From Zygophlyctis sp. KS116 (Eukaryota > Fungi > Chytridiomycota), in contig BAAFSQ010000344.1 of NCBI GenBank assembly GCA_054661495.1, forward strand, positions 1-9,698: DNA of 9,698 nt. The letters are read 5' to 3'. Positions 1 through 9,698 of this stretch are shown here, in pieces. Under the pieces are notes generated by a model. It searched no databases and was not told where the DNA came from. It worked only from the letters and a program-made list of their open reading frames with translations. The first letter of the stretch is position 1; each line of letters begins with the position of its first letter. The translations under genes and the position numbers were made by a program.

Positions 1-1
1 T

Positions 2-298
2 TGTCGACGGTAGGACACAGAAAAACCTAGAGATAGTACTAGAACTAATAGATTTGATTTATAATTCCAAAGATTGATAAAAGACTCAAGTAGACAATTA
101 AAAGCTAATTCCTAGTTGAGATTTATTCAGATAGAAGATAAACCACTAAAGAAAAGAACCCTCAAGCCACATGCAAAGGCCATTAAAAACCCCAGTCACA
201 AAACATCTGGGGAAAAGGTTACTTGCAAATATATGGGCTAGGAATCTACACCAGAGCCTTCCCCTGAATCCAAGTCCGAATTCACCTTATAGCCAACA
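2..298 (-). repeat. 3' LTR of element A (297 bp)
   Basis: Minus strand reads TGTTGGCTAT...CCGTCGACA. No mismatch seen by eye against 4569-4865. Preceded on the minus strand by the PPT. Confidence 0.97.
122..127 (-). terminator. Putative poly(A) signal AATAAA in the 3' LTR of A (5' LTR copy at 4689-4694)
   Basis: Plus strand TTTATT. It lies 20 nt downstream of the predicted R start (147 / 4714), consistent with a short R region. Confidence 0.55.
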
Positions 299-483
299 TC
301 ATCCTCCTCCTCCAGGAATGCTTTAGACCGATCCTCCTCGTTTGTATATTCAACGTTTAAGAAGTAATCTTCATCTTGGTTTAATCTGACATTCCAGGGA
401 GCCATATTGGCTTGATTCACTAAACTTTTAAGGATATTACCATTAGGATCCCGTAACCAGTATGTCGGGTAATAACCATAGCT
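238..483 (-). CDS. Out-of-frame (+1) C-terminal continuation of element A integrase: rest of the GPY/F module plus an acidic tail
   Basis: Frame reads SYGYYPTYWLRDPNGNILKSLVNQANMAPW...EEEDDVGYKVNSDLDSGEGSGVDS*. It aligns without gaps to element B SVGPHDSYILKRPNGELEPHSVNANHLAHY after the shared WxGPFII motif. Includes the listed 238..420 ORF. The stop lies inside the 3' LTR. Confidence 0.85.
   Translation of the reverse strand, partial: SYGYYPTYWLRDPNGNILKSLVNQANMAPWNVRLNQDEDYFLNVEYTNEEDRSKAFLEEEDDVGYKVNSDLDSGEGSGVDS
299..313 (-). other. Polypurine tract (PPT) of element A
   Basis: Minus strand GGAGGAGGAGGATGA directly abuts the TG start of the 3' LTR. Confidence 0.9.
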
Positions 484-3400
484 TATGGATAATAAATGGG
501 CCTTTCCAAGAGAATTGAAACTTTGTCTTCTGGAAATTCTTTATTTTAACCCAGTCGTCAATAGCAAAATAAAAATCTTTCGAGTTAGTATTGAATACCT
601 CCTTCTGAGCTTGAGTCCGCAAATAGGCTTGTCCTCTAGCAGCTCCAAGATCCTCCAATTCTCTATTCGTAAAACCTTCTACAGCCAGTCTTTCTTCCAC
701 TTCATCTAAGGGAGCCAATAATTGATCCGGAGGAGTAGAATCACCTGAGATACGAGGATGCAACCCAAATAAAACATAAAATGGAGACAACTTGGTCACC
801 GCATGAGTTCGCACCCGCATACCCCAGACTATTTCAGCTACATAATCATCCCAGCGATTAACTCTGGTTTGACACAAGGCACTAATTCCATGATTAATCA
901 TTGAATGCATTCTCTCCACGAGGCCATTAGTTGCCGGGTGATATGGAGACGTTTTCAAATGCTTGATTCGATGAATATTCAAAAACTCTTCAAATTCTTG
1001 AGACATAAAGTTAGCTCCCCTATCGGTGATCAATTCCGATGGACATCCAATAAAACAAATAATATGATGATAAAAGAATTGAATAACCGTAGTCGAGCTC
1101 ATATCCCTCACCGGCACTGCCCATACCCAGCGGGATGCATAATCAACACAAGTTATGCAATGCCGATTCCCTGATTTAGATAATGGTAAGTTAGATAAGA
1201 AATCCAATCCAAGTCGTTCAAACGGCAACGCAACGGGAGGAATAGGTTGCAAGGGAGGTTTTGGAGCACCACCTCGACTTCGGGCAAGTTGACAGTTTAC
1301 ACAGCTCTTCACATATTGCCTTAAATCACTCTGCAAGTTTGGCCAATAGTATCTTCTAACTATAAGATCTAAAATTGACTCGGCTCCCAAATGACCCAGA
1401 TTGTCGTGGAAACGAGCCAAGATTTCCTGTCGTTGATTTGCCGGAACATAAGCTCTCGGCCAACCTACTGGAGTAAGATAATATAACTTAGCTCCCATTA
1501 TTTTGAACTTTTCAATAAATCGTCTGAACTTTGAATATTCATGTTCTTGGCATTTCCACTCCTGATTCATTAGAAATTCAGCCACGTCTTCCGGCCAATC
1601 ATGAGTAGCAGATTCTATGACGTTCATTTCAACAAATTGTTTATCTTTTAGCAGTATGATTTCGCTACTATCTTGATTAGTAGTAGAAAAGGTAGGAGAC
1701 CTGCTAAGAGCGTCAGCTACCACATTGCTGACGCCCGAGATATGCTCGATAACAAAATCAAATTGAGATAACTCCTCGGCCCATCTGGCATGCCGAGGTT
1801 TGAATAAACGAGCAGTTCTAAAATACTTGAGATTATTGTGGTCAGACTTCACAATTATCTTCTCCTTAGAATACAACAAGAAGTGACGCCATTGCCTAAA
1901 CGACTCAACAATTGATAAAAGTTCTTTGTCGTAGACACTGTAATTCGTCTCTGCCGCTGAGAATTTCTTTGAAAAGAATTCGATTGGGCGAAAATTTTTA
2001 TCAGCGTCCATTTGGCTGAGAACCGAACCCAGGGCGAAGTCTGAAGCGTCACAAAAAATGTAAAATTTGCCGTCCGGATCTGGAAACTTCAACATAACAT
2101 CTTCTGCCACAGCCAGCTTTAAATCTTCAAATGCCTTAGTCTCTAATTCAGCCCATTTAAATTCTACAGATTTCTTTGTCAGCTGCGTCAATGGATATGC
2201 CAGACCGGAAAAGTTCTTGATGAACTTTCTATAGTAATTTACCAATCCCACAAAACTTCTGACTTCTTTGACGTTTCTTGGGGTCCCAAAATTCTTTATT
2301 GCCTGCATTTTATCTTTTTCCATCAAGATCCCTTCGGTAGTGATTCGATAGCCCAGATAAACCAATTCAGTAGAAAGGAAAGTACATTTCTCTAAGCTAA
2401 CAATCAAGTTATTTTGTTTTATCCTAGTAAAAACTTCTTTTAGGTGGAGCTCATGCTCCTCTACAGAGTTAGAGTAAATAAGGATATCGTCTAAGTAAAC
2501 TTCCAGGTAAATGTCGATCAAATCTCTAAATATAGAATTGACAAAGCGCATAAAGGCAGCAGGGGCATTGGTGAGCCCAAATTGCACAACCAGTGGTTCG
2601 AATTGCCCAAATTTACACCTGAAGGCTGCCTTGAATTCGTGGCCAGGACGAATCCGTACCAAATTGTAAGCGCCTCTAAGATCCACACTTGTAAATACCT
2701 TTGCATCCTTAAACTTAGATATCACATCAGACACCAGTGGAATTGGGTGACCATCCTTTATGGTATTGGCATTCAATTCCCTATAGTCTATGCAGGGACG
2801 TAGTTTTCCTGTCTTCTTCTTCACGAAGAATATCGGCGCTGCATAGGGACTACTACTTGGCCTTATAAAACCTTTAGCTAGATTATCATCAACCCACTTT
2901 CGCAGCTCCAACTCTTCATGATTCGACAAGGGATAAATTTTGAGGAAGGGAGGTGTAAGTTTTACATCTTTTAAGTTTATCTCCAAATCATATTCTCGTT
3001 CAGGGGGCAATGAATCCACCTCCTTCTCCAAACAAACAGATTCAAACTCCTTGATGATTTCAGGCAGAGAATACTCGTCCTTCGATTCATCCGTTTCGAT
3101 GGGACTCTCTTCTATAGGAACCTTCACACTACTATTCAGATTTTGTAGTAATAAATTGGAACTACGTTCCTTTATATTTAAATCACCTTGAGCCGCACTA
3201 AATTCGAGTTTCCTCGTACTCCAATCAATAGACGGATTAGCCTTAGACAACCAAGGGAGACCCAGAACAACATCAAACTTCAGACCTGGCACAATCATAA
3301 GATCCAAAGACACACGAGGGGCACCAGGAATGTCAATTAATCCAACAACTGTATCAGTCAGAGATTCGTTACAGTTGATTGTAGAACCATTTGCAAGGCG

Positions 3401-4519
3401 AACTTCCAAGTTATCAGGCAAACACGTTGTCGGCAAAAACATTGACTCCACAAATTCCTCAGAAACAAAATTACCAGTCGCCCCGCTATCCACCATAGCA
3501 CAGACAGGCACGTTCAGATCATCAATTATCATAAATGAAGACAAAGAAATCGTCTCCGCAGGACTCATAGCCGATATTTGAAGCATATTTAGACCGGGTT
3601 TGTTAAACTTATTTGATCTGCTAGGACAAGAAGCTAGCCTGTGGTCCTTATTGCCGCAGTAAAGACAGAGATTGTTATCCATCCGGTACTTCTTCTCTTC
3701 AGGGGTCAGCTTTTTAAATTTCTGAGGTTGCGCGGAATCCAGATCCATTGGAGTAGGACCCGGTGGAGGCCGCGAGAAGAATCTAGGGGTGGTAGAATAA
3801 TTCTTAACAGTACCTGACTTCTCGACCCGGCGATCATAAAGCCGTTGGTCGATCTTAACACACAGAGCTATATAATCTTCAAGATCATTTGGTTCATCCA
3901 GAGTATTGGCTAAGCGATCCTTTATATCCTCGTTCAGCCCCTTTCTGAAGAAGTTAATCAGAGCATCCTTATTAAATCCTGTATCGTTGGCGATACGTCT
4001 AAACTTAGTTGCATAAGAGAGACAAGATCCTTTCCCTTGTTTTAGTCTTCCCAGGGCATCTGCAGCATGACGCTGAGTATTTGGGTCCTCGAAAAATGCC
4101 TTGAATTCCAGGATAAAAGAAGAGTAATTCCTCAAGAGACCAGAGCGACGTTCCACAATGTCGCGGAACCAGGCCAATGCTTCGTGAGACAAAAGAGTAC
4201 CAATAAAGCGAGTTTTGATTTCATCATTGAAGTATTTTCCAGGCTGTAAAGCAAATAAGTTTTCTACTGAGAGTAAGAAATCTCTACAGCGACCAATAGA
4301 TCCATTATATCTTTCAGGTAAAGCGACATTTAAATTTGGATTAGCAGATCCAATAGATTCCAATTGTAGCAATCGCTGATTGAGGTTAAAGAGCAGATTT
4401 GAGAAATCAGAGTTCATAGGAGTGCCAGGTCGAGCACCACCAAGTCCAGCATCTTCAGAACGAGATCCGACAGGTGATGGAGCAGAACCTGCAACAAAAT
4501 TATCCAGATTATTTTCCAT
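443..4519 (-). CDS. gag-pol: Gag-Pol polyprotein of element A (1358 aa from the first ATG; about 1426 aa if the 3' frameshift is corrected)
   Basis: Sushi/PEG10-like capsid (LPERYNG...LSHEALAWF, QGKGSCLSYATKF, GPTPMDLD). CX2CX4HX4C knuckle CLYCGNKDHRLASC (3626-3667). Protease VDSGA (DSG 3482-3490). RT LRPCIDYRELN and YLDD (2486-2497). RNase H CDASDFA..DKELL..SDH..ADALSR. Integrase HDNLGH..CVNC, LDF/TDRG/VER, GPF (494-502). First ATG is at 4519; the 4585 start in the ORF track is a GTG inside the LTR. Confidence 0.95.
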   Translation of the reverse strand: MENNLDNFVAGSAPSPVGSRSEDAGLGGARPGTPMNSDFSNLLFNLNQRLLQLESIGSANPNLNVALPERYNGSIGRCRDFLLSVENLFALQPGKYFNDEIKTRFIGTLLSHEALAWFRDIVERRSGLLRNYSSFILEFKAFFEDPNTQRHAADALGRLKQGKGSCLSYATKFRRIANDTGFNKDALINFFRKGLNEDIKDRLANTLDEPNDLEDYIALCVKIDQRLYDRRVEKSGTVKNYSTTPRFFSRPPPGPTPMDLDSAQPQKFKKLTPEEKKYRMDNNLCLYCGNKDHRLASCPSRSNKFNKPGLNMLQISAMSPAETISLSSFMIIDDLNVPVCAMVDSGATGNFVSEEFVESMFLPTTCLPDNLEVRLANGSTINCNESLTDTVVGLIDIPGAPRVSLDLMIVPGLKFDVVLGLPWLSKANPSIDWSTRKLEFSAAQGDLNIKERSSNLLLQNLNSSVKVPIEESPIETDESKDEYSLPEIIKEFESVCLEKEVDSLPPEREYDLEINLKDVKLTPPFLKIYPLSNHEELELRKWVDDNLAKGFIRPSSSPYAAPIFFVKKKTGKLRPCIDYRELNANTIKDGHPIPLVSDVISKFKDAKVFTSVDLRGAYNLVRIRPGHEFKAAFRCKFGQFEPLVVQFGLTNAPAAFMRFVNSIFRDLIDIYLEVYLDDILIYSNSVEEHELHLKEVFTRIKQNNLIVSLEKCTFLSTELVYLGYRITTEGILMEKDKMQAIKNFGTPRNVKEVRSFVGLVNYYRKFIKNFSGLAYPLTQLTKKSVEFKWAELETKAFEDLKLAVAEDVMLKFPDPDGKFYIFCDASDFALGSVLSQMDADKNFRPIEFFSKKFSAAETNYSVYDKELLSIVESFRQWRHFLLYSKEKIIVKSDHNNLKYFRTARLFKPRHARWAEELSQFDFVIEHISGVSNVVADALSRSPTFSTTNQDSSEIILLKDKQFVEMNVIESATHDWPEDVAEFLMNQEWKCQEHEYSKFRRFIEKFKIMGAKLYYLTPVGWPRAYVPANQRQEILARFHDNLGHLGAESILDLIVRRYYWPNLQSDLRQYVKSCVNCQLARSRGGAPKPPLQPIPPVALPFERLGLDFLSNLPLSKSGNRHCITCVDYASRWVWAVPVRDMSSTTVIQFFYHHIICFIGCPSELITDRGANFMSQEFEEFLNIHRIKHLKTSPYHPATNGLVERMHSMINHGISALCQTRVNRWDDYVAEIVWGMRVRTHAVTKLSPFYVLFGLHPRISGDSTPPDQLLAPLDEVEERLAVEGFTNRELEDLGAARGQAYLRTQAQKEVFNTNSKDFYFAIDDWVKIKNFQKTKFQFSWKGPFIIHKLWLLPDILVTGS

Positions 4520-4554
4520 AGTAAGTTTAAAAGAATTCTTTAACAAAGATTTGA

Positions 4555-4564
4555 AGTGGTTTAT
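4555..4564 (-). other. Self-priming primer-binding site of A (ATAAACCACT)
   Basis: Begins after a 4-nt spacer (AAGT) following the 5' LTR end. No TGG tRNA-type motif. Exact reverse complement of AGTGGTTTAT at 4714-4705 (minus strand) in its own LTR. Confidence 0.85.
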
Positions 4565-4568
4565 ACTT

Positions 4569-4865
4569 TGTCGACGGTAGGACACAGAAAAACCTAGAGA
4601 TAGTACTAGAACTAATAGATTTGATTTATAATTCCAAAGATTGATAAAAGACTCAAGTAGACAATTAAAAGCTAATTCCTAGTTGAGATTTATTCAGATA
4701 GAAGATAAACCACTAAAGAAAAGAACCCTCAAGCCACATGCAAAGGCCATTAAAAACCCCAGTCACAAAACATCTGGGGAAAAGGTTACTTGCAAATATA
4801 TGGGCTAGGAATCTACACCAGAGCCTTCCCCTGAATCCAAGTCCGAATTCACCTTATAGCCAACA
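4569..4865 (-). repeat. 5' LTR of element A (297 bp)
   Basis: Identical by eye to 2-298. TG...CA ends. Followed on the minus strand by the PBS and the gag ATG. Confidence 0.97.
4705..4725 (-). promoter_or_regulatory. Predicted transcription start (about 4714) and self-primer of A, preceded by an 11-nt pyrimidine tract
   Basis: Minus strand TTCTTTTCTTT|AGTGGTTTAT. In Tf1-type priming the primer is the RNA 5' end, so the TSS position is inferred rather than observed. Confidence 0.65.
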
Positions 4866-4869
4866 TGAT
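4866..4869. other. 4-bp spacer TGAT between the two 5' LTRs (candidate target-site remnant or shared TSD)
   Basis: Junction ...GCCAACA|TGAT|TGTCAGT... Boundaries were fixed by comparing each LTR with its partner copy. Confidence 0.8.
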
Positions 4870-4987
4870 TGTCAGTAAGTGATTTCTTATGTCCCTATCA
4901 TGTTATAAGAATGATTTAATTCTTATTAAACTATAGGATATCACCTTATATGAATTATTACTAGTGAAGCTTATTAGGTCTGTGGCT

Positions 4988-5010
4988 GACGTGTTAGGTT
5001 GAAACACGTC
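4988..5010. repeat. 8-bp inverted repeat GACGTGTT-N7-AACACGTC in U3 of B (also 9562-9584)
   Basis: Perfect arms at 4988-4995 and 5003-5010, 15-37 nt upstream of the predicted TSS. Confidence 0.7.
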
Positions 5011-5013
5011 GGA

Positions 5014-5035
5014 CCTTTTCCTTTATAGCAAATAT
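5014..5035 (+). promoter_or_regulatory. Predicted transcription start (about 5025) and 11-nt self-primer of B, preceded by an 11-nt pyrimidine tract
   Basis: CCTTTTCCTTT|ATAGCAAATAT. 5025-5035 is the exact reverse complement of the PBS at 5127-5137. Confidence 0.7.
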
Positions 5036-5089
5036 CAATAAAGATATTTGATTATAAAGGTAATACAATAAAGATATTTGATTATAAAG
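5036..5089 (+). repeat. 24-bp direct repeat x2 (30-bp period) in the B LTR, each copy carrying AATAAA (also 9610-9663)
   Basis: CAATAAAGATATTTGATTATAAAG at 5036-5059 and 5066-5089, separated by GTAATA. Confidence 0.95.
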
Positions 5090-5126
5090 TGTGTATCTGA
5101 GATAACTTAGTTTTACATCTCACAGA

Positions 5127-5137
5127 ATATTTGCTAT
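5127..5137 (+). other. Self-priming primer-binding site of B (ATATTTGCTAT)
   Basis: Begins after a 2-nt spacer (GA) following the 5' LTR end. 11 of 11 complementary to 5025-5035. No TGG tRNA-type motif. Confidence 0.9.
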
Positions 5138-5142
5138 CTACT

Positions 5143-8100
5143 ATGACAGAAAGAGAACCTATGAATATTGGACATGAAAGAGCTCCATCACCACTTGATA
5201 CAGTGATTAATAATGCCGTGAATATAGAACAAATTGCAATTAAGCAAAATGAAATGGAACAAATGATGGCCCAAATGTACTCTATGATATCAAAATTGGA
5301 GGTATCCCAACAGCAAAAAAAGGAATTTAACTGTGCATCCAGAGACGCGAAGATGCCGGATGTCAGAGAATTTACTGGGGATGCTCGAGAATACAACCAA
5401 TTTGAAATTTTGTTAGAGGCTTTCTTCCGTAATCAGCCAATTAAATTTGCTCAAGACTTCTCTAAAATTGACTATGTGGGGTCCAGACTGACCGGAAAAG
5501 CTTTGGAGTGGTACACCAACTTTAAAATGGGAGAGCGGAAGAAGGAAAGTGCTGCATCTTATTCTTATGCAGTTTTCTGGGAAAAGTTCTCGAAACACTT
5601 CAAAGCTAAGTATAGTGATATGGTGGCAGAACATCAGATACATCAGTTGAGACAAGGGAAATCTAGTATTAAGGATTATATATCAGAATTTGAGAATGTT
5701 TTGGCTCTTACATCACACGTTTCCGATGTTAAAGGCATTTTCTTACGATCTGTAAACGAAAAGACTCTACATGATATTCTTTCTAACTCTCTTGTACTAC
5801 CACAACTGATTGAAGATTACGACTTTTTAAAGGATTGGTTAATGCAAAGACATGCTCATCAGGAAATTATCTCTTTGGCTGGACAAAATTTCTTACCGGT
5901 TCCTCTCGCTTCGTCAAGTCCAGTAACTGCTATGAATGACCCAGTTGTGCCCATGGATCTTAGTCGGGTTGAACAAAAGACGGGAAAATTTAAACCAAAA
6001 TGGAAATTTATCTCACCCGATGAATACAAAAAATTTAAGAGCATTTGTCTAGCGAATCAAATTTGTTTCAGCTGCCGGGAGTATAAGGGCCATATGGATG
6101 ATTGTGCGTTAAATACAACTGATTCAGTTTACTTGTCAGTCATCAATGAGAGCGAGATTAGAGTGGAAATCGTTATAGACCAACCTTGTTTCTCTACACT
6201 TCATGCATTAGTTGATACTGGAGCTCAGGGCAATGCGATAATCAGCTCTAGATTTATTAAGAAACATAATATCAAAACTCAAATATGCTCGCGAGTTGAT
6301 TTGAAAGCCTTTGATGGTTCTACATTGGATACAATTAACCGAACCACATTACCCCTGCAGTGCTGCATAAATGGCAATTTTTATAATATTTCGTTTTTGG
6401 TAGCCAATCATCTAAAAGAAGATGCTATTTTGGGGCTAGATTGGTTGAAAAGGAATTCTATTGTTATTGATTGCGTGGACGGTACATTGCACCGTCGGGA
6501 AAAAGTTTTCAAAATTCGGGTGGTTGAGGTTTTAGACGAAATGCCTGCCTCACAAATACCACCTTATTTGACTGAATTTCAGGATGTTTTCGATTTGGGA
6601 AAGGCGAATCAACTACCCCCTTACAACCTCGATACCGCCATGTCTATTAATTTGGTTCCCGAAGCTACAATTCCGCAATCATTCCCTTATAAATTGTCTA
6701 AACAAGAGGAGATAGCTCTGAAACAGGAAATAGATCAGGGTTTGGCATCTGGGAAAATTGTTTGTTCAGATGCTTTTGGATCATCCCCTGTACTATTCGT
6801 TAAAAAAGATAGTGGAAAGCTACGTATGTGTGTTGACTATCGGAAAGTCAATGATTTAACTGTTTCGGAACAGGCAATTCTTCCTGATATTCAAGAGGTT
6901 CTGGCATCATTAGGTGACCAATCTGACAAAAAACCACTATATTCTAAACTAGATCTGAAAGGCGCATTCAATTTGTTACGTCTTACTCAAGGATCCGAGG
7001 AATTATCAACATTTATTACTAAATTTGGTAAATATAAATATCGAGTCATACCTTTCGGGTTGAAAAACGCCCCTGGTCACTTTCAAAATGTCATGAACAA
7101 ATTGATGTCAGATCTTATTGGACAAGGAGTTTATGTTTACATCGACGACATCATTATCTATGAGCGAGACTCAGAAAAACACCGTAACTTACTACGTAGA
7201 GTTTTATCTGCCTTACGTGAGGCAGGTCTGGTAGCAAACTTATCAAAATGTCATTTTATGCAGGATGAAGTAGAATTTCTCGGTTTTAGCCTTGGTCAGC
7301 AGGGTATCCGTATGCTAAAATCCAAGATAGATGCCATCGAATGTTTTTCATGTCCTAAATCAGTAAAACAGCTCCAGTCGTTTTTAGGGATCTGTAATTT
7401 TTATCGGTCCTTTTTGCCACACTATACTGAAACATGCAAACCACTATTGCAATTACTAAAAAAGAATAATCAATTTCTCTGGACAACAGACTGCGAAATG
7501 GCTTTTATTAAATTGAAGAAAATGTTTAGGGAAGAAACATTTTTGAAACTGCCCAATCGTTCTGCACCTTTTTTCTTATTTTGCGATGCATCTAACTTCG
7601 CAATTGGTGCAGCTTTACATCAACAGTCGCAGGAGGGTGAGTTGCAACCGATTGCCTTTTTCTCTCGCAAACTTTCTGATTCTGAAAGAAATTATACAAT
7701 TTTCGATAAGGAGTTATTGGCTATCAAAGAACCCCTTGCTTATTGGAGACACCTCTTGATTGCAACTGATACTCCTATTACTATATACTCAGATCATGAT
7801 AATCTTACTTTTTTCAAATCAGCCCAAAAACTAAACCAGCGACAGGCTCGTTGGCAGCAGTTCTTAGCCGATTACAATTTTAAGATAGAACATATATCAG
7901 GAACCTTAAACACAGTGGCTGATGCTCTATCACGCAGGAAAGATTATTCTGATTCTTCACCGCATGTTGCTACGCTCTTGCCAAAAAATCTTTTTATTTC
8001 AGCTATTGAAACAGCATCCCCCACTACTTCGCTAGAGGAAACTGCAATTAATGATCCAGCATCTACTACCTATGCTACTTGGCCAATCTTCATGTACGAC

Positions 8101-9456
8101 TTCTTGGTTCATAAGCGTATTCCAATCAATCTGCCCACTCGATTTCAAAACCGGATTCGTAAAGAACAAAGTTCTTTTTATGTTAGTCAAGGTCAACTGT
8201 TTCGGAAAGTTCAGTTCAACAATCAGCTGGTTGCTGTCCCATATCTTTATCATGCAGACCGGAGTGATGTAATGAAAACAACTCACGAAACCCTTGGTCA
8301 TTTGGGATTCAGGGCTACTTTTCCATCATTGTGCGTTCGTTTTTGGTGGCCGGGAGTAAGAGCTGACTATGAACATTACTGTAAAACTTGTAGAGCATGT
8401 CAGATGAATAACAATAGTACTCGACCTCAGCGCCATCCGATGCATCCTCTTCCGGATCCGGGTGTACCTTTCCATACTTGGCATTTAGATTTTATCCAAG
8501 ATTTACCCGAATCATCTACTGGAAAAACACAGATTTTGATTGCTGTGGATCGCTCTACCCGTTTTTCAATGGCTGCTTCATTTTCCAATCGTGATACTGG
8601 CTCAGTCCTAGGATTTTTACACACTCTTTGTACCCGCTTTGGAGTTCCTGCCCGGATTATAACTGACAGAGCTAAATATTTCATGAATGAGTTTGAGGAG
8701 TATTGCAATTCTCAGGGGATTAAAGTGGACCACACTGCCGCTTATCACCCACAAACTAATGCTTTGGTTGAACGAACAAATGGGATATTAGAGGGAATTT
8801 TGCGCAAATATTGTAATGGAATGTGGTCAAAATGGGATTTATTTCTTGATACTGCTGTTTTCAATCTAAATAGCAGGACACACTCAACTACGGGCTATAC
8901 CCCTTTTTATCTGGCGCATGGCGTGAGCCCCCGATTTCCTCTACATTCTGATCCACCTCGCTTATTTAACTTTCGTAACCCTGAAGATAGGCTTTTATAT
9001 ACTGCTAGGGAGTTAGAAAATCTGGGTCAGGCTAGAGCGGCTTCTCTTTTTAGATCCAACTCTCACGCAAAGAAGATTGCTCAGAATTATGATGAAGTAC
9101 ATAATGCAGTGAGTGACCGATTTATGCCTGGCCAGTTTGTAAAACGCATTAGAAAGCGGTTACCCAACCAAATGATCCCAAAGTTAGCTACACGGTGGGA
9201 AGGACCTTTCATTATTGAGAGCGTGGGGCCACATGATTCTTATATTCTTAAAAGGCCTAATGGGGAATTGGAACCTCATTCAGTCAATGCAAATCACTTA
9301 GCTCATTACATAAATGATCAGAATTTAAGTGTAATTCGATTTGATTCAGAAGTCAGTTTTATTCTTCATAAACGCTTCTATTTATCCTGTGGGTTTTCAT
9401 GTGTATTGGCGACTGCTTGGAAGGAGTCTGGAGGGGAGCATGCTGTCAGTAAGTGA
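5143..9456 (+). CDS. gag-pol: Gag-Pol polyprotein of element B (1437 aa from the first ATG)
   Basis: Capsid (MPDVREFTG...LTGKALEWY, QGKSSIKDYISEF, VPMDLS). Variant knuckle CFSCREYKGHMDDC (6064-6105). Protease VDTGA (DTG 6214-6222). RT LRMCVDYRKVN, PFGLKNAP and YIDD (7138-7149). RNase H CDASNFA..DKELL..SDH..ADALSR. Integrase HETLGH..CRAC, LDF/TDRA/VER, GPF (9202-9210). The stop lies 11-13 nt inside the 3' LTR. Confidence 0.96.
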   Translation: MTEREPMNIGHERAPSPLDTVINNAVNIEQIAIKQNEMEQMMAQMYSMISKLEVSQQQKKEFNCASRDAKMPDVREFTGDAREYNQFEILLEAFFRNQPIKFAQDFSKIDYVGSRLTGKALEWYTNFKMGERKKESAASYSYAVFWEKFSKHFKAKYSDMVAEHQIHQLRQGKSSIKDYISEFENVLALTSHVSDVKGIFLRSVNEKTLHDILSNSLVLPQLIEDYDFLKDWLMQRHAHQEIISLAGQNFLPVPLASSSPVTAMNDPVVPMDLSRVEQKTGKFKPKWKFISPDEYKKFKSICLANQICFSCREYKGHMDDCALNTTDSVYLSVINESEIRVEIVIDQPCFSTLHALVDTGAQGNAIISSRFIKKHNIKTQICSRVDLKAFDGSTLDTINRTTLPLQCCINGNFYNISFLVANHLKEDAILGLDWLKRNSIVIDCVDGTLHRREKVFKIRVVEVLDEMPASQIPPYLTEFQDVFDLGKANQLPPYNLDTAMSINLVPEATIPQSFPYKLSKQEEIALKQEIDQGLASGKIVCSDAFGSSPVLFVKKDSGKLRMCVDYRKVNDLTVSEQAILPDIQEVLASLGDQSDKKPLYSKLDLKGAFNLLRLTQGSEELSTFITKFGKYKYRVIPFGLKNAPGHFQNVMNKLMSDLIGQGVYVYIDDIIIYERDSEKHRNLLRRVLSALREAGLVANLSKCHFMQDEVEFLGFSLGQQGIRMLKSKIDAIECFSCPKSVKQLQSFLGICNFYRSFLPHYTETCKPLLQLLKKNNQFLWTTDCEMAFIKLKKMFREETFLKLPNRSAPFFLFCDASNFAIGAALHQQSQEGELQPIAFFSRKLSDSERNYTIFDKELLAIKEPLAYWRHLLIATDTPITIYSDHDNLTFFKSAQKLNQRQARWQQFLADYNFKIEHISGTLNTVADALSRRKDYSDSSPHVATLLPKNLFISAIETASPTTSLEETAINDPASTTYATWPIFMYDFLVHKRIPINLPTRFQNRIRKEQSSFYVSQGQLFRKVQFNNQLVAVPYLYHADRSDVMKTTHETLGHLGFRATFPSLCVRFWWPGVRADYEHYCKTCRACQMNNNSTRPQRHPMHPLPDPGVPFHTWHLDFIQDLPESSTGKTQILIAVDRSTRFSMAASFSNRDTGSVLGFLHTLCTRFGVPARIITDRAKYFMNEFEEYCNSQGIKVDHTAAYHPQTNALVERTNGILEGILRKYCNGMWSKWDLFLDTAVFNLNSRTHSTTGYTPFYLAHGVSPRFPLHSDPPRLFNFRNPEDRLLYTARELENLGQARAASLFRSNSHAKKIAQNYDEVHNAVSDRFMPGQFVKRIRKRLPNQMIPKLATRWEGPFIIESVGPHDSYILKRPNGELEPHSVNANHLAHYINDQNLSVIRFDSEVSFILHKRFYLSCGFSCVLATAWKESGGEHAVSK
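9430..9443 (+). other. Polypurine tract (PPT) of element B
   Basis: GGAGGGGAG(CATGC) immediately before the TG of the 3' LTR. Confidence 0.85.
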
Positions 9457-9698
9457 TTTCTTATGTCCCTATCATGTTATAAGAATGATTTAATTCTTAT
9501 TAAACTATAGGATATCACCTTATATGAATTATTACTAGTGAAGCTTATTAGGTCTGTGGCTGACGTGTTAGGTTGAAACACGTCGGACCTTTTCCTTTAT
9601 AGCAAATATCAATAAAGATATTTGATTATAAAGGTAATACAATAAAGATATTTGATTATAAAGTGTGTATCTGAGATAACTTAGTTTTACATCTCACA
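9444..9698 (+). repeat. 3' LTR of element B (255 bp)
   Basis: Identical by eye to 4870-5124. Ends in CA at the last base of the window. Confidence 0.97.
9611..9646 (+). terminator. Two putative poly(A) signals AATAAA (9611-9616, 9641-9646) in the 3' LTR of B
   Basis: Canonical hexamers 12 and 42 nt downstream of the predicted R start, followed by GT-rich GTGTGTAT. Confidence 0.55.

Follow-up and report, generated by a model that had tools for sequence, protein, structure and literature searches.

The window analysed here is an entire contig, C344 (9.7 kb), from the 12.7-Mb, 1175-contig assembly of the lake chytrid Zygophlyctis sp. KS116. It contains two intact Ty3/Gypsy elements arranged head to head, A on the minus strand and B on the plus strand, with 4 bp (TGAT) between them. 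Its features are as follows.

1..1, no strand: last base (T) of the left copy of A's TGAT target duplication, the rest lying off the contig; loose ends at 4568 in runs X2 and X3 end ...CAATGA, followed by T
2..298, minus strand: 3′ LTR of element A, 297 bp, TG..CA; exact repeat of 4569-4865
299..315, minus strand: polypurine tract of A, a purine run directly 5′ of the 3′ LTR
443..4585, minus strand: gag-pol ORF of A, 1380 aa, with gag, protease, RT, RNase H and integrase from domain matches and Ty3 Gag-Pol (7q5b); no chromodomain
4555..4564, minus strand: putative self-priming primer-binding site (PBS) of A, 10 nt, complementary to LTR positions 152-161
4569..4865, minus strand: 5′ LTR of A, from the exact repeat
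4866..4869, no strand: spacer TGAT, both A's right 4-bp duplication copy and the last 4 bases of B's left ATGAT copy, from sequence and read-derived flanks
4870..5124, plus strand: 5′ LTR of element B, 255 bp, TG..CA, from the exact repeat; holds a tandem copy of a 24-nt unit
5127..5137, plus strand: putative self-priming PBS of B, 11 nt, complementary to LTR positions 156-166 (window 5025-5035)
5131..9456, plus strand: gag-pol ORF of B, 1441 aa as listed, first in-frame ATG at 5143; identified by its domains and by Ty3 Gag-Pol as closest solved relative
9419..9443, plus strand: polypurine-rich tract of B, preceding the 3′ LTR
9444..9698, plus strand: 3′ LTR of B, from the exact repeat and reads; off the contig, X2 continues with ATGAT and then the U5 end of a family F LTR (as on contig C528)

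The elements are framed by two exact repeats (window 1-299 = 4568-4866 and 4870-5124 = 9444-9698), within which TG..CA ends set the bounds of A at 2-4865 (4864 bp) and of B at 4870-9698 (4829 bp). Each has one long ORF encoding gag, protease, RT, RNase H and integrase in that order, with Ty3 Gag-Pol as the closest solved relative of both polyproteins. TG..CA LTRs around this domain set, together with target duplications in the 4-6 bp range of Ty3/Gypsy elements (TGAT/TGAT for A and ATGAT/ATGAT for B, from the window and read-derived flanks), place both in Ty3/Gypsy (Metaviridae). Neither matches the chromodomain PF00385, which separates them from the chromoviruses (Tf1/sushi); A's close relatives P0001-P0017 also lack this domain, and more distant matches possess it. 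The two polyproteins are 30% identical and the LTRs are unrelated. An earlier sequence-only reading, which described two distinct full-length elements of similar length, with diverged proteins and identical LTR pairs, is thus borne out. It also called both elements self-priming. A 10-nt stretch 4 nt past the 5′ LTR of A and an 11-nt stretch 2 nt past that of B are indeed complementary to the element's own LTR, which makes self-priming plausible. A and B are unrelated Ty3/Gypsy elements, probably active and putatively self-priming in the Tf1 style.

A protein search with B (E<=1e-150) returned no match and A's exact protein was absent from the protein collection searched, so copies in other assemblies are untraceable by exact look-up. 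Relatives of A in metagenomes lie mostly on wrap-around LTR-interior-LTR contigs that lack flanks.

The ends of C344 coincide exactly with the ends of maximal LTR repeats; these termini are an assembly-graph break, not biology. The source assembly is fragmented and apparently metagenome-derived. Both observations lend some weight to the idea that the A-B juxtaposition is an assembly or concatenation artefact, an explanation that the reads nevertheless make very improbable. In X2, an independent run from another sample and another study, a 63-nt unitig spans the junction (window 4837-4899). Its depth of 251, against 301 for the A interior and 656 for the A LTR (Logan contig depths, which are not copy numbers), is about that of a single-copy sequence. 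Furthermore, A and B both have matching target duplications that take in the spacer, and assembler joins need shared k-mers rather than 4-bp unique spacers. Exact repeats, ORFs and the X2 unitig therefore agree on a real head-to-head pair with a 4-bp spacer. Counted across the source genome, the exact junction motif occurs once, with no recurrent A-B pair, and A and B are each single copy in the assembly.

Loose read ends extend the locus in both directions. To the left of A, in runs X2 and X3, ...GTAACA ATGA leads into window base 1 (T); to the right of B, an X2 loose end reads ATGAT followed by an exact match to C528:4591-4615, which on that contig forms the U5 end of a 5′ LTR, with a TGG-type primer-binding site behind it. 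The order read out is E|ATGAT|A|TGAT|B|ATGAT|F. The flanks come from a 31-nt unitig on the left and a 35-nt unitig on the right, and E is taken to be an LTR end from its resemblance to one. A search for the U3 part of F across the genome matched C528 itself alone. B has a different flank in run X4, another metagenome, where its 3′ LTR is followed by a C-family LTR start from its 5th base. A B-like U3 fragment on C523 likewise has an unrelated flank and is not beside A, and additional copies of B are probably present in X2.

A and B arrived in separate, successive integrations at a single 5-bp site, as sequence and reads show. Before insertion, the resident LTRs E and F faced each other with their U5 ends across 5 bp, ATGAT; entry of B duplicated ATGAT (5-bp stagger) and entry of A TGAT (4-bp stagger). 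Sequential insertion predicts that the inner TGAT should repeat the core of the outer ATGAT, as it does; the orders A-first and B-first are indistinguishable. Among the three origins offered by the sequence-only reading, a nucleotide-precise hotspot for both families is the one that these data support and extend, since ATGAT was used by A and by B and is bounded by two further LTR ends. Targeting of one family to the U3 end of the other finds no support, given U3|U3, U5|U5 and U5|U3 junctions between many family pairs and the different surroundings of B in X4 and of its relative on C523. The remaining origin, in which A and B were joined before integration or co-integrated as a paired unit, draws on the ATGAT found on both sides of the whole pair and on the equal youth of A and B, each with an identical LTR pair. 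It is nonetheless highly unlikely. For a pre-joined unit, the chance of an inner junction that matches the outer duplication's core is about 1/256, the junction occurs only once and the A-B unit does not recur at other loci, B has another flank in X4 and probable extra copies in X2, and abutting pairs are found for many other family combinations. Ligation of unprocessed cDNA ends was considered specifically and rejected, as the inner LTR boundary bases predict a TC+GC spacer and TGAT is found. With neither of these two origins borne out, the "unusual partner-retrotransposon system" that had been proposed does not hold.

Close apposition of LTR ends extends well beyond this pair. About 170 kb of the genome was read letter by letter; automated junction calling from BLAST end points proved too noisy. 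A TG lies 3-6 nt outside the edge at 14 of 17 outer LTR termini, versus 0.24 in the control (p about 6e-7), and most neighbours at these 14 termini are recognisable as LTR ends by homology. On the TE contigs of this genome an LTR end thus lies, as a rule, 3-6 bp from another, and stacking is routine. Matching duplications mark insertions flush against a resident LTR end on C369 (AAAT) and C446 (CAAA), and on re-reading the TCCT (C487) and AGGA (C397) duplications lie 5-9 nt inside a C-like LTR; insertions with verified target site duplications (TSDs) that are flush with, or at most 9 nt from, a resident LTR end number five. Different elements follow one and the same X-family LTR edge on C308 and on C446, and an X-like edge behaves likewise in contigs of two other lakes (L032, L035). 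Spacers on either side of one element can be unequal, as on C476 (TAAAT / CATC) and C446 (CAAAC / AAATC). Chance adjacency, that is, untargeted insertion in a TE-dense region, could appeal to the more than 110 Gypsy RT matches concentrated on TE-only contigs. It is barely credible: random insertion into 5-kb elements would strike a 5-bp gap about 0.1% of the time, against 14 of 17 termini abutting an LTR end and the five TSD-verified insertions.

As the cause of this site reuse, we favour targeting in the manner of Ty3 and Tj1. The chytrid Gypsy families would be aimed at RNA polymerase III (Pol III) transcription starts, and each newcomer would enter the same few bases beside a Pol III gene and move older elements outward. 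Seamless stacks would result, with copies of the target duplication as spacers, and one end of the stack, past E or F, would hold a Pol III gene such as a tRNA gene. Retrotransposons of this kind (Ty3, Tj1, DGLT-A) are marked by an LTR edge no more than about 20 bp upstream of a tRNA, 5S or U6 gene and by an integrase tethered through TFIIIB/TFIIIC or another Pol III factor; the first trait is seen in relatives but not in A or B themselves. Sequential insertion of A and B at one 5-bp site combined with Pol III targeting, the cause being the inferred part, is given a probability of roughly 0.55. Several adjacencies argue for it. In a metagenome relative of A (L029; 46% identical and lacking a chromodomain), the 3′ LTR ends 4 nt before a 5S rRNA gene. 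On C131, a C-family LTR starts 8 nt from tRNA-His, and by coordinates Gypsy elements abut the 5′ sides of tRNAs on C550 and C167, the latter with a second element behind the tRNA-adjacent first one. Among tRNAs within 160 nt of a contig start, seven have the 5′ end facing outward and none the 3′ end, a bias of contig breaks to the upstream side of tRNA genes that is in keeping with such targeting. The kinship of both polyproteins with Ty3 Gag-Pol and the start-site targeting of the self-priming Tj1 point the same way. Against it, both neighbours identified for A and B are LTR ends, and the window together with 104 kb of TE contigs yielded a single Pol III gene, the tRNA-His on C131. The Pol III reading further requires that E or F be no older than A and B, whereas the F-family copy on C528 carries an in-frame stop, although that copy may not be the actual neighbour. 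The differing spacers on C476 and C446 are not predicted by pure one-site stacking, which therefore needs additional LTR-LTR recombination.

Integration could instead be aimed at resident LTR edges, or at the palindromic gap ...ACA-N4/5-TGT... between them, with no Pol III gene required. An integrase or host factor would recognise chromosomal LTR termini, and each insertion would supply two new landing pads, hence self-growing stacks. This is a live rival and more novel than the Pol III reading, though we consider it rather doubtful. In its favour, A and B have an LTR end on either side and their known surroundings include no Pol III gene, the five TSD-verified insertions lie flush with a resident LTR end or at most 9 nt away, and all LTR end combinations are found. 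Nucleotides 5-9 of C-like LTRs were struck by four families in four independent events (J and an E-like element on C487, H on C397, and B in run X4), and in each case a perfect TATA box facing outward precedes the duplication by 24-25 nt; overall, a TATA-like sequence is found 20-32 nt upstream in 6 of 7 events, versus 0.12 in the control. A preference for palindromic target flanks is also documented for LTR elements (PMC6911290). Evidence in the genome and in the relative, however, points directly to Pol III genes, and stacking at Pol III sites would give the same junctions with no new mechanism. The TATA link rests on one LTR family and disappears at plain LTR-LTR gaps, where a good TATA box 20-32 nt inside the edge occurs in only 3 of 15, and a general TATA-box rule for such gaps was accordingly dropped. 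Beyond TGT..ACA, LTR termini vary between families; a B-like element on C74 lies in unique DNA, and a C-family LTR on C609 abuts a truncated gag. The strong form of the idea, in which LTR termini are self-propagating landing pads that draw integration to within about 10 bp of any resident edge independently of Pol III, we regard as unlikely. For some families, outward-facing TATA boxes 24-34 nt inside the edge might recruit TBP/TFIIIB. Were LTR landing pads real, TE islands would extend as seamless concatenates and spare the compact genome. A literature search for LTR-edge targeting found no direct precedent.

The A-B pair is not a new partner system; it documents site reuse in nature very cleanly, with LTR ends of four families meeting in one 5-bp target and the duplications still legible. 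Taken with the tRNA and 5S adjacencies, the pair suggests that diverse chromodomain-less, self-priming Gypsy elements of freshwater chytrids use Ty3/Tj1-like precision targeting, of which no report in chytrids was found in the literature searched. Such precision would account for the persistence of more than 100 elements in so compact a genome (12.7 Mb), and the system is suited to asking whether Pol III factors or LTR ends guide integration.

Comparison with known systems places A and B among several partial precedents. Tf1/sushi elements have an 11-nt PBS just past the 5′ LTR, complementary to an internal LTR segment, which the putative PBSs of A and B resemble, but Tf1 carries a chromodomain and is directed to Pol II promoters, whereas A, B and A's close relatives have no chromodomain match. 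Newer LTR elements are known to gather beside or within older ones, both in a 1993 study cited in PMC5911963 and in the nesting preferences of plant elements (PMC6911290); those are regional or statistical preferences, whereas insertion here is precise to a few bases of LTR termini. Ty3 of Saccharomyces cerevisiae integrates with nucleotide precision at Pol III start sites (PMC5911963, PMC6673722). It is the closest solved relative of both polyproteins (7q5b), and the L029 relative sits 4 nt before its 5S gene in Ty3 fashion; the differences are that Ty3 is tRNA-primed, A and B look self-primed, and identity is low. Multi-family stacks at one nucleotide are not described in the Ty3 literature examined (PMC5911963, PMC6673722). 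Tj1 of Schizosaccharomyces japonicus, a self-priming Gypsy element, is about 5 kb long, has LTRs of some 250 bp and a PBS able to pair with its own LTR, makes a 5-bp duplication and inserts 1-10 bp upstream of Pol III start sites; several families cluster with tRNA genes (PMC4600332). A and B resemble it in length, LTR size and putative self-priming PBS, and B also in its 5-bp duplication. They differ from Tj1 in their chytrid host, their single gag-pol ORF and their known flanks, which are LTR ends, and the stacks in this genome are seamless, involve many families and have spacers of duplication length only.

Contig C344, which makes up the entire window, belongs to a 12.7 Mb assembly of 1175 contigs. 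A repeat search of the window returned two exact direct repeats, each marking an LTR element:

2-4865, minus strand: element A, with 297-bp LTRs
4866-4869: spacer TGAT between A and B
4870-9698, plus strand: element B, with 255-bp LTRs

Each element contains a single long ORF, and a domain search of both identified gag, aspartic protease, RT, RNase H, and zinc-binding and catalytic integrase domains, with no chromodomain. A and B are members of Ty3/Gypsy; their polyproteins are 30% identical, and the top solved relative of each is Ty3 Gag-Pol. The exact repeats, coordinates, and ORFs bear out the head-to-head pair around TGAT described by the sequence-only reading. A purine tract precedes the 3′ LTR of both elements, and a 10- or 11-nt stretch just 3′ of the 5′ LTR is complementary to the middle of the element's own LTR, resembling the self-priming arrangement of Tf1 and Tj1 (Tj1: PMC4600332). 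Judged from this complementarity, A and B probably self-prime as Tf1 and Tj1 do, yet have no chromodomain. The LTR of B also carries a tandemly duplicated 24-nt unit with AATAAA (5036-5090), and sequencing run X3 holds a variant that skips 5017-5081 and has 12 other letters instead. Conservation among B-like LTRs is strongest in a block made up of an 8-bp stem and a 7-nt loop (window 4989-5011; homologous positions in C446, C480, C74, C397, and C369). This block lies ~20 nt upstream of the stretch that is complementary to the primer-binding site and may belong to the self-priming structure or to the promoter.

The exact repeat 1-299 = 4568-4866 includes one chance base past the LTR on each side; C344 starts at that base and finishes at the final base of the B LTR. 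Contig C537 (1-77 = 4651-4727) ends 77 nt inside an LTR, as do C131 and C609, which have their first 77 nt in common. To us, such contig ends look like graph breaks at repeats, and the flanks of the A-B pair were therefore sought in reads. Parts of the window are present in 20 runs from 12 studies, and Logan contigs from four runs were aligned to window 1900-7899. In run X2, whose sample and study differ from the presumed source of the assembly, a 63-nt unitig spans 4837-4899 (29 nt of A LTR, TGAT, and 30 nt of B LTR) at depth 251, compared with 301 for the A interior and 656 for the A LTR. The junction is thus confirmed in independent reads and exists outside this assembly at about A's abundance. 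We consider it highly improbable that the adjacency is an artefact, and just as improbable that it is due to chance.

Since the two LTRs of an element do not differ, outer-flank reads surface at the inner LTR borders as loose ends. Left of A (X2 and X3), these read ...GTAACA ATGA before window base 1 (T). This flank resembles the U5 ends of other LTR families and recurs on C487 with 2 mismatches, from which we infer an LTR end, E. Right of B (X2), ATGAT leads into 25 nt with an exact match at C528:4591-4615, where a further Gypsy element (family F) has the U5 end of its 5′ LTR. In both the R and F LTR families (C476 (L002) 5164-5495; C528 (L022) 4570-4771), a TGG-type (tRNA-like) primer-binding site comes next, so that this priming mode and the probable self-priming of the A and B families coexist within the same stacks.

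Together, the window and the read-derived flanks give the layout E-ATGAT-A-TGAT-B-ATGAT-F, in which the duplications are TGAT/TGAT for A and ATGAT/ATGAT for B. Taking out both elements leaves E-ATGAT-F, a 5-bp gap joining two LTR ends. Both orders of arrival reproduce the present sequence: B would have entered first with a 5-bp stagger and A second with a 4-bp stagger, or A would have come first, with the 5-bp target of B then taking in A's terminal base. Our conclusion is that A and B integrated separately into a single target, and the hotspot shared by A and B, one of the options raised from the sequence, can be read from the nested duplications. Insertion of a pre-joined or co-integrated A-B unit into ATGAT would likewise yield the outer repeats, but an inner spacer matching the duplication core would then arise by chance only (~1 in 256), and we give the proposed paired unit very little weight. 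End-joining of unprocessed cDNAs was also considered and rejected, as the bases beside the inner LTR borders predict TC+GC and TGAT is observed.

The proposal of a partner-retrotransposon system did not hold up either. A and B are each single copy in the assembly (nearest relatives ≤78% identical in the LTR and ~68% in the interior), the junction motif occurs once in the genome, and a B-like U3 fragment on C523 (95% across ~130 nt) has an unrelated flank. In run X4, the B 3′ LTR runs on into the start of a C-family LTR, entering it at base 5, which places B elsewhere in that population; C131 and C609 each begin with a copy of that C-family LTR. The B interior is deeper than the A interior in X2, and a variant joint in that run, 5936→6530, points to an additional copy of B, contig-derived depth being only suggestive. 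Contigs of X2 and X3 make this joint at high depth and carry the window version of 5937-6529 at low depth; for A there is a weaker joint, 1936→3153 (X2 and X3; window 1937-3152). Variant or deleted copies of B coexist, and perhaps of A. The A-B pair is an ordinary hotspot product in this genome.

Over 110 Gypsy RT matches occur in the assembly, mostly on one-element contigs of ~5 kb. A flank survey of ~170 kb counted the outer ends of those elements whose two LTRs share a contig, together with two read-derived termini. TG lies 3-6 nt outside the edge in 14/17 outer termini (control 0.24, p ~6e-7), and the neighbor is another LTR terminus by homology in most cases; for one of the 14 (an H-family U5 end), the position falls within a C-like LTR and not at an LTR start.

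Stacked LTR termini and their separators on other contigs
C369: B-like LTR end, AAAT, element G, AAAT
C446: X-LTR end, CAAA, element el1, CAAA, C, solo LTR, AAATC, B-like element
C308: X-LTR end as on C446 (98% identical), CAAAA, different B-like element, CAA, further element
C437: B-like LTR, AATAT, A-like LTR
C476: R-LTR end, TAAAT, A-like element, CATC, R-LTR
C480: LTR end, GATGT, B-like LTR

Matching duplications (AAAT; CAAA; TCCT on C487; AGGA on C397) mark these as real integrations. Abutting LTR ends occur in all orientations, and in two other lake metagenomes X-like LTR ends are followed 5-6 nt further on by other elements. Counter-examples are a B-like element in unique DNA on C74 and a C-family LTR on C609 adjoining a truncated gag. 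By coordinates, C328, C330, and C350 each carry two adjacent full-length Gypsy elements, arranged head to head on C328 and head to tail on the other two. On ENA scaffold L030 (267-614, 4649-5299), a G-like element runs directly into the leader of another copy; these tandem elements may share one LTR or reflect an assembly cycle.

Stacking at a Pol III-type start site is our preferred explanation for this site reuse, with a probability of about 0.55. One metagenome relative shares 46% identity with A and likewise has no chromodomain; its 3′ LTR stops 4 nt short of a 5S rRNA gene that runs in the same orientation (scaffold L029, 4777-4954; LTR end 4831, gene 4836-4954, 108 bits), a Ty3-like case of start-site targeting. 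On C131, 8 nt separate tRNA-His from the start of a C-family LTR. Of 62 tRNAs, seven lie ≤160 nt from a contig start and have the 5′ end toward the break (C131:86, C532:84, C236:87, C56:117, C1092:156, C130:8, and C264:2, for example), against zero in the opposite orientation; three start at 84-87 nt, equal to 77 nt of LTR plus 7-10 nt, and contigs seem to break within LTRs 7-10 nt upstream of tRNAs. By coordinates, a tRNA lies just past a Gypsy element on C550, and one on C167 is followed by two Gypsy elements tail to tail. If element after element entered at a single start site, the outcome would be a stack with duplication copies as sole separators, exactly the E-ATGAT-A-TGAT-B-ATGAT-F pattern. 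Against this, the known neighbors of A and B, the youngest-looking pair, are both LTR ends with no Pol III gene among them, and stacks with unlike spacers on either side of one element need additional LTR recombination.

Alternatively, LTR edges or LTR-LTR gaps may themselves be the target, independently of Pol III, a more novel idea that we regard as doubtful and less likely than start-site stacking. In favor of this idea, four events from four families hit nt 5-9 of C-like LTRs, in each of which a perfect outward-facing TATA box precedes the duplication by 24-25 nt, and a TATA-like motif lies 20-32 nt upstream in 6/7 verified events (control 0.12); this signal, however, traces to a single LTR family, and plain LTR-LTR gaps lack it. 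The box, TATATAAAG on the outward strand, is conserved 33-34 nt from the U3 edge of C-like LTRs (C397 (L008) 2666-2690 and 7800-7880; C576 (L011) 2000-2270; C487 (L021) 100-160 and 5160-5220; C131/C609 1-77).

Under start-site stacking, the LTR ends beside Pol III genes in A's relative and in the C family recall Ty3 and the self-priming Tj1 (PMC4600332). The targeting of A and B would accordingly be closest to that of Tj1 and Ty3, through a feature seen in their relatives only and not in A or B, and seamless, genome-wide stacking by many families in a chytrid would constitute a new instance of this known targeting type.
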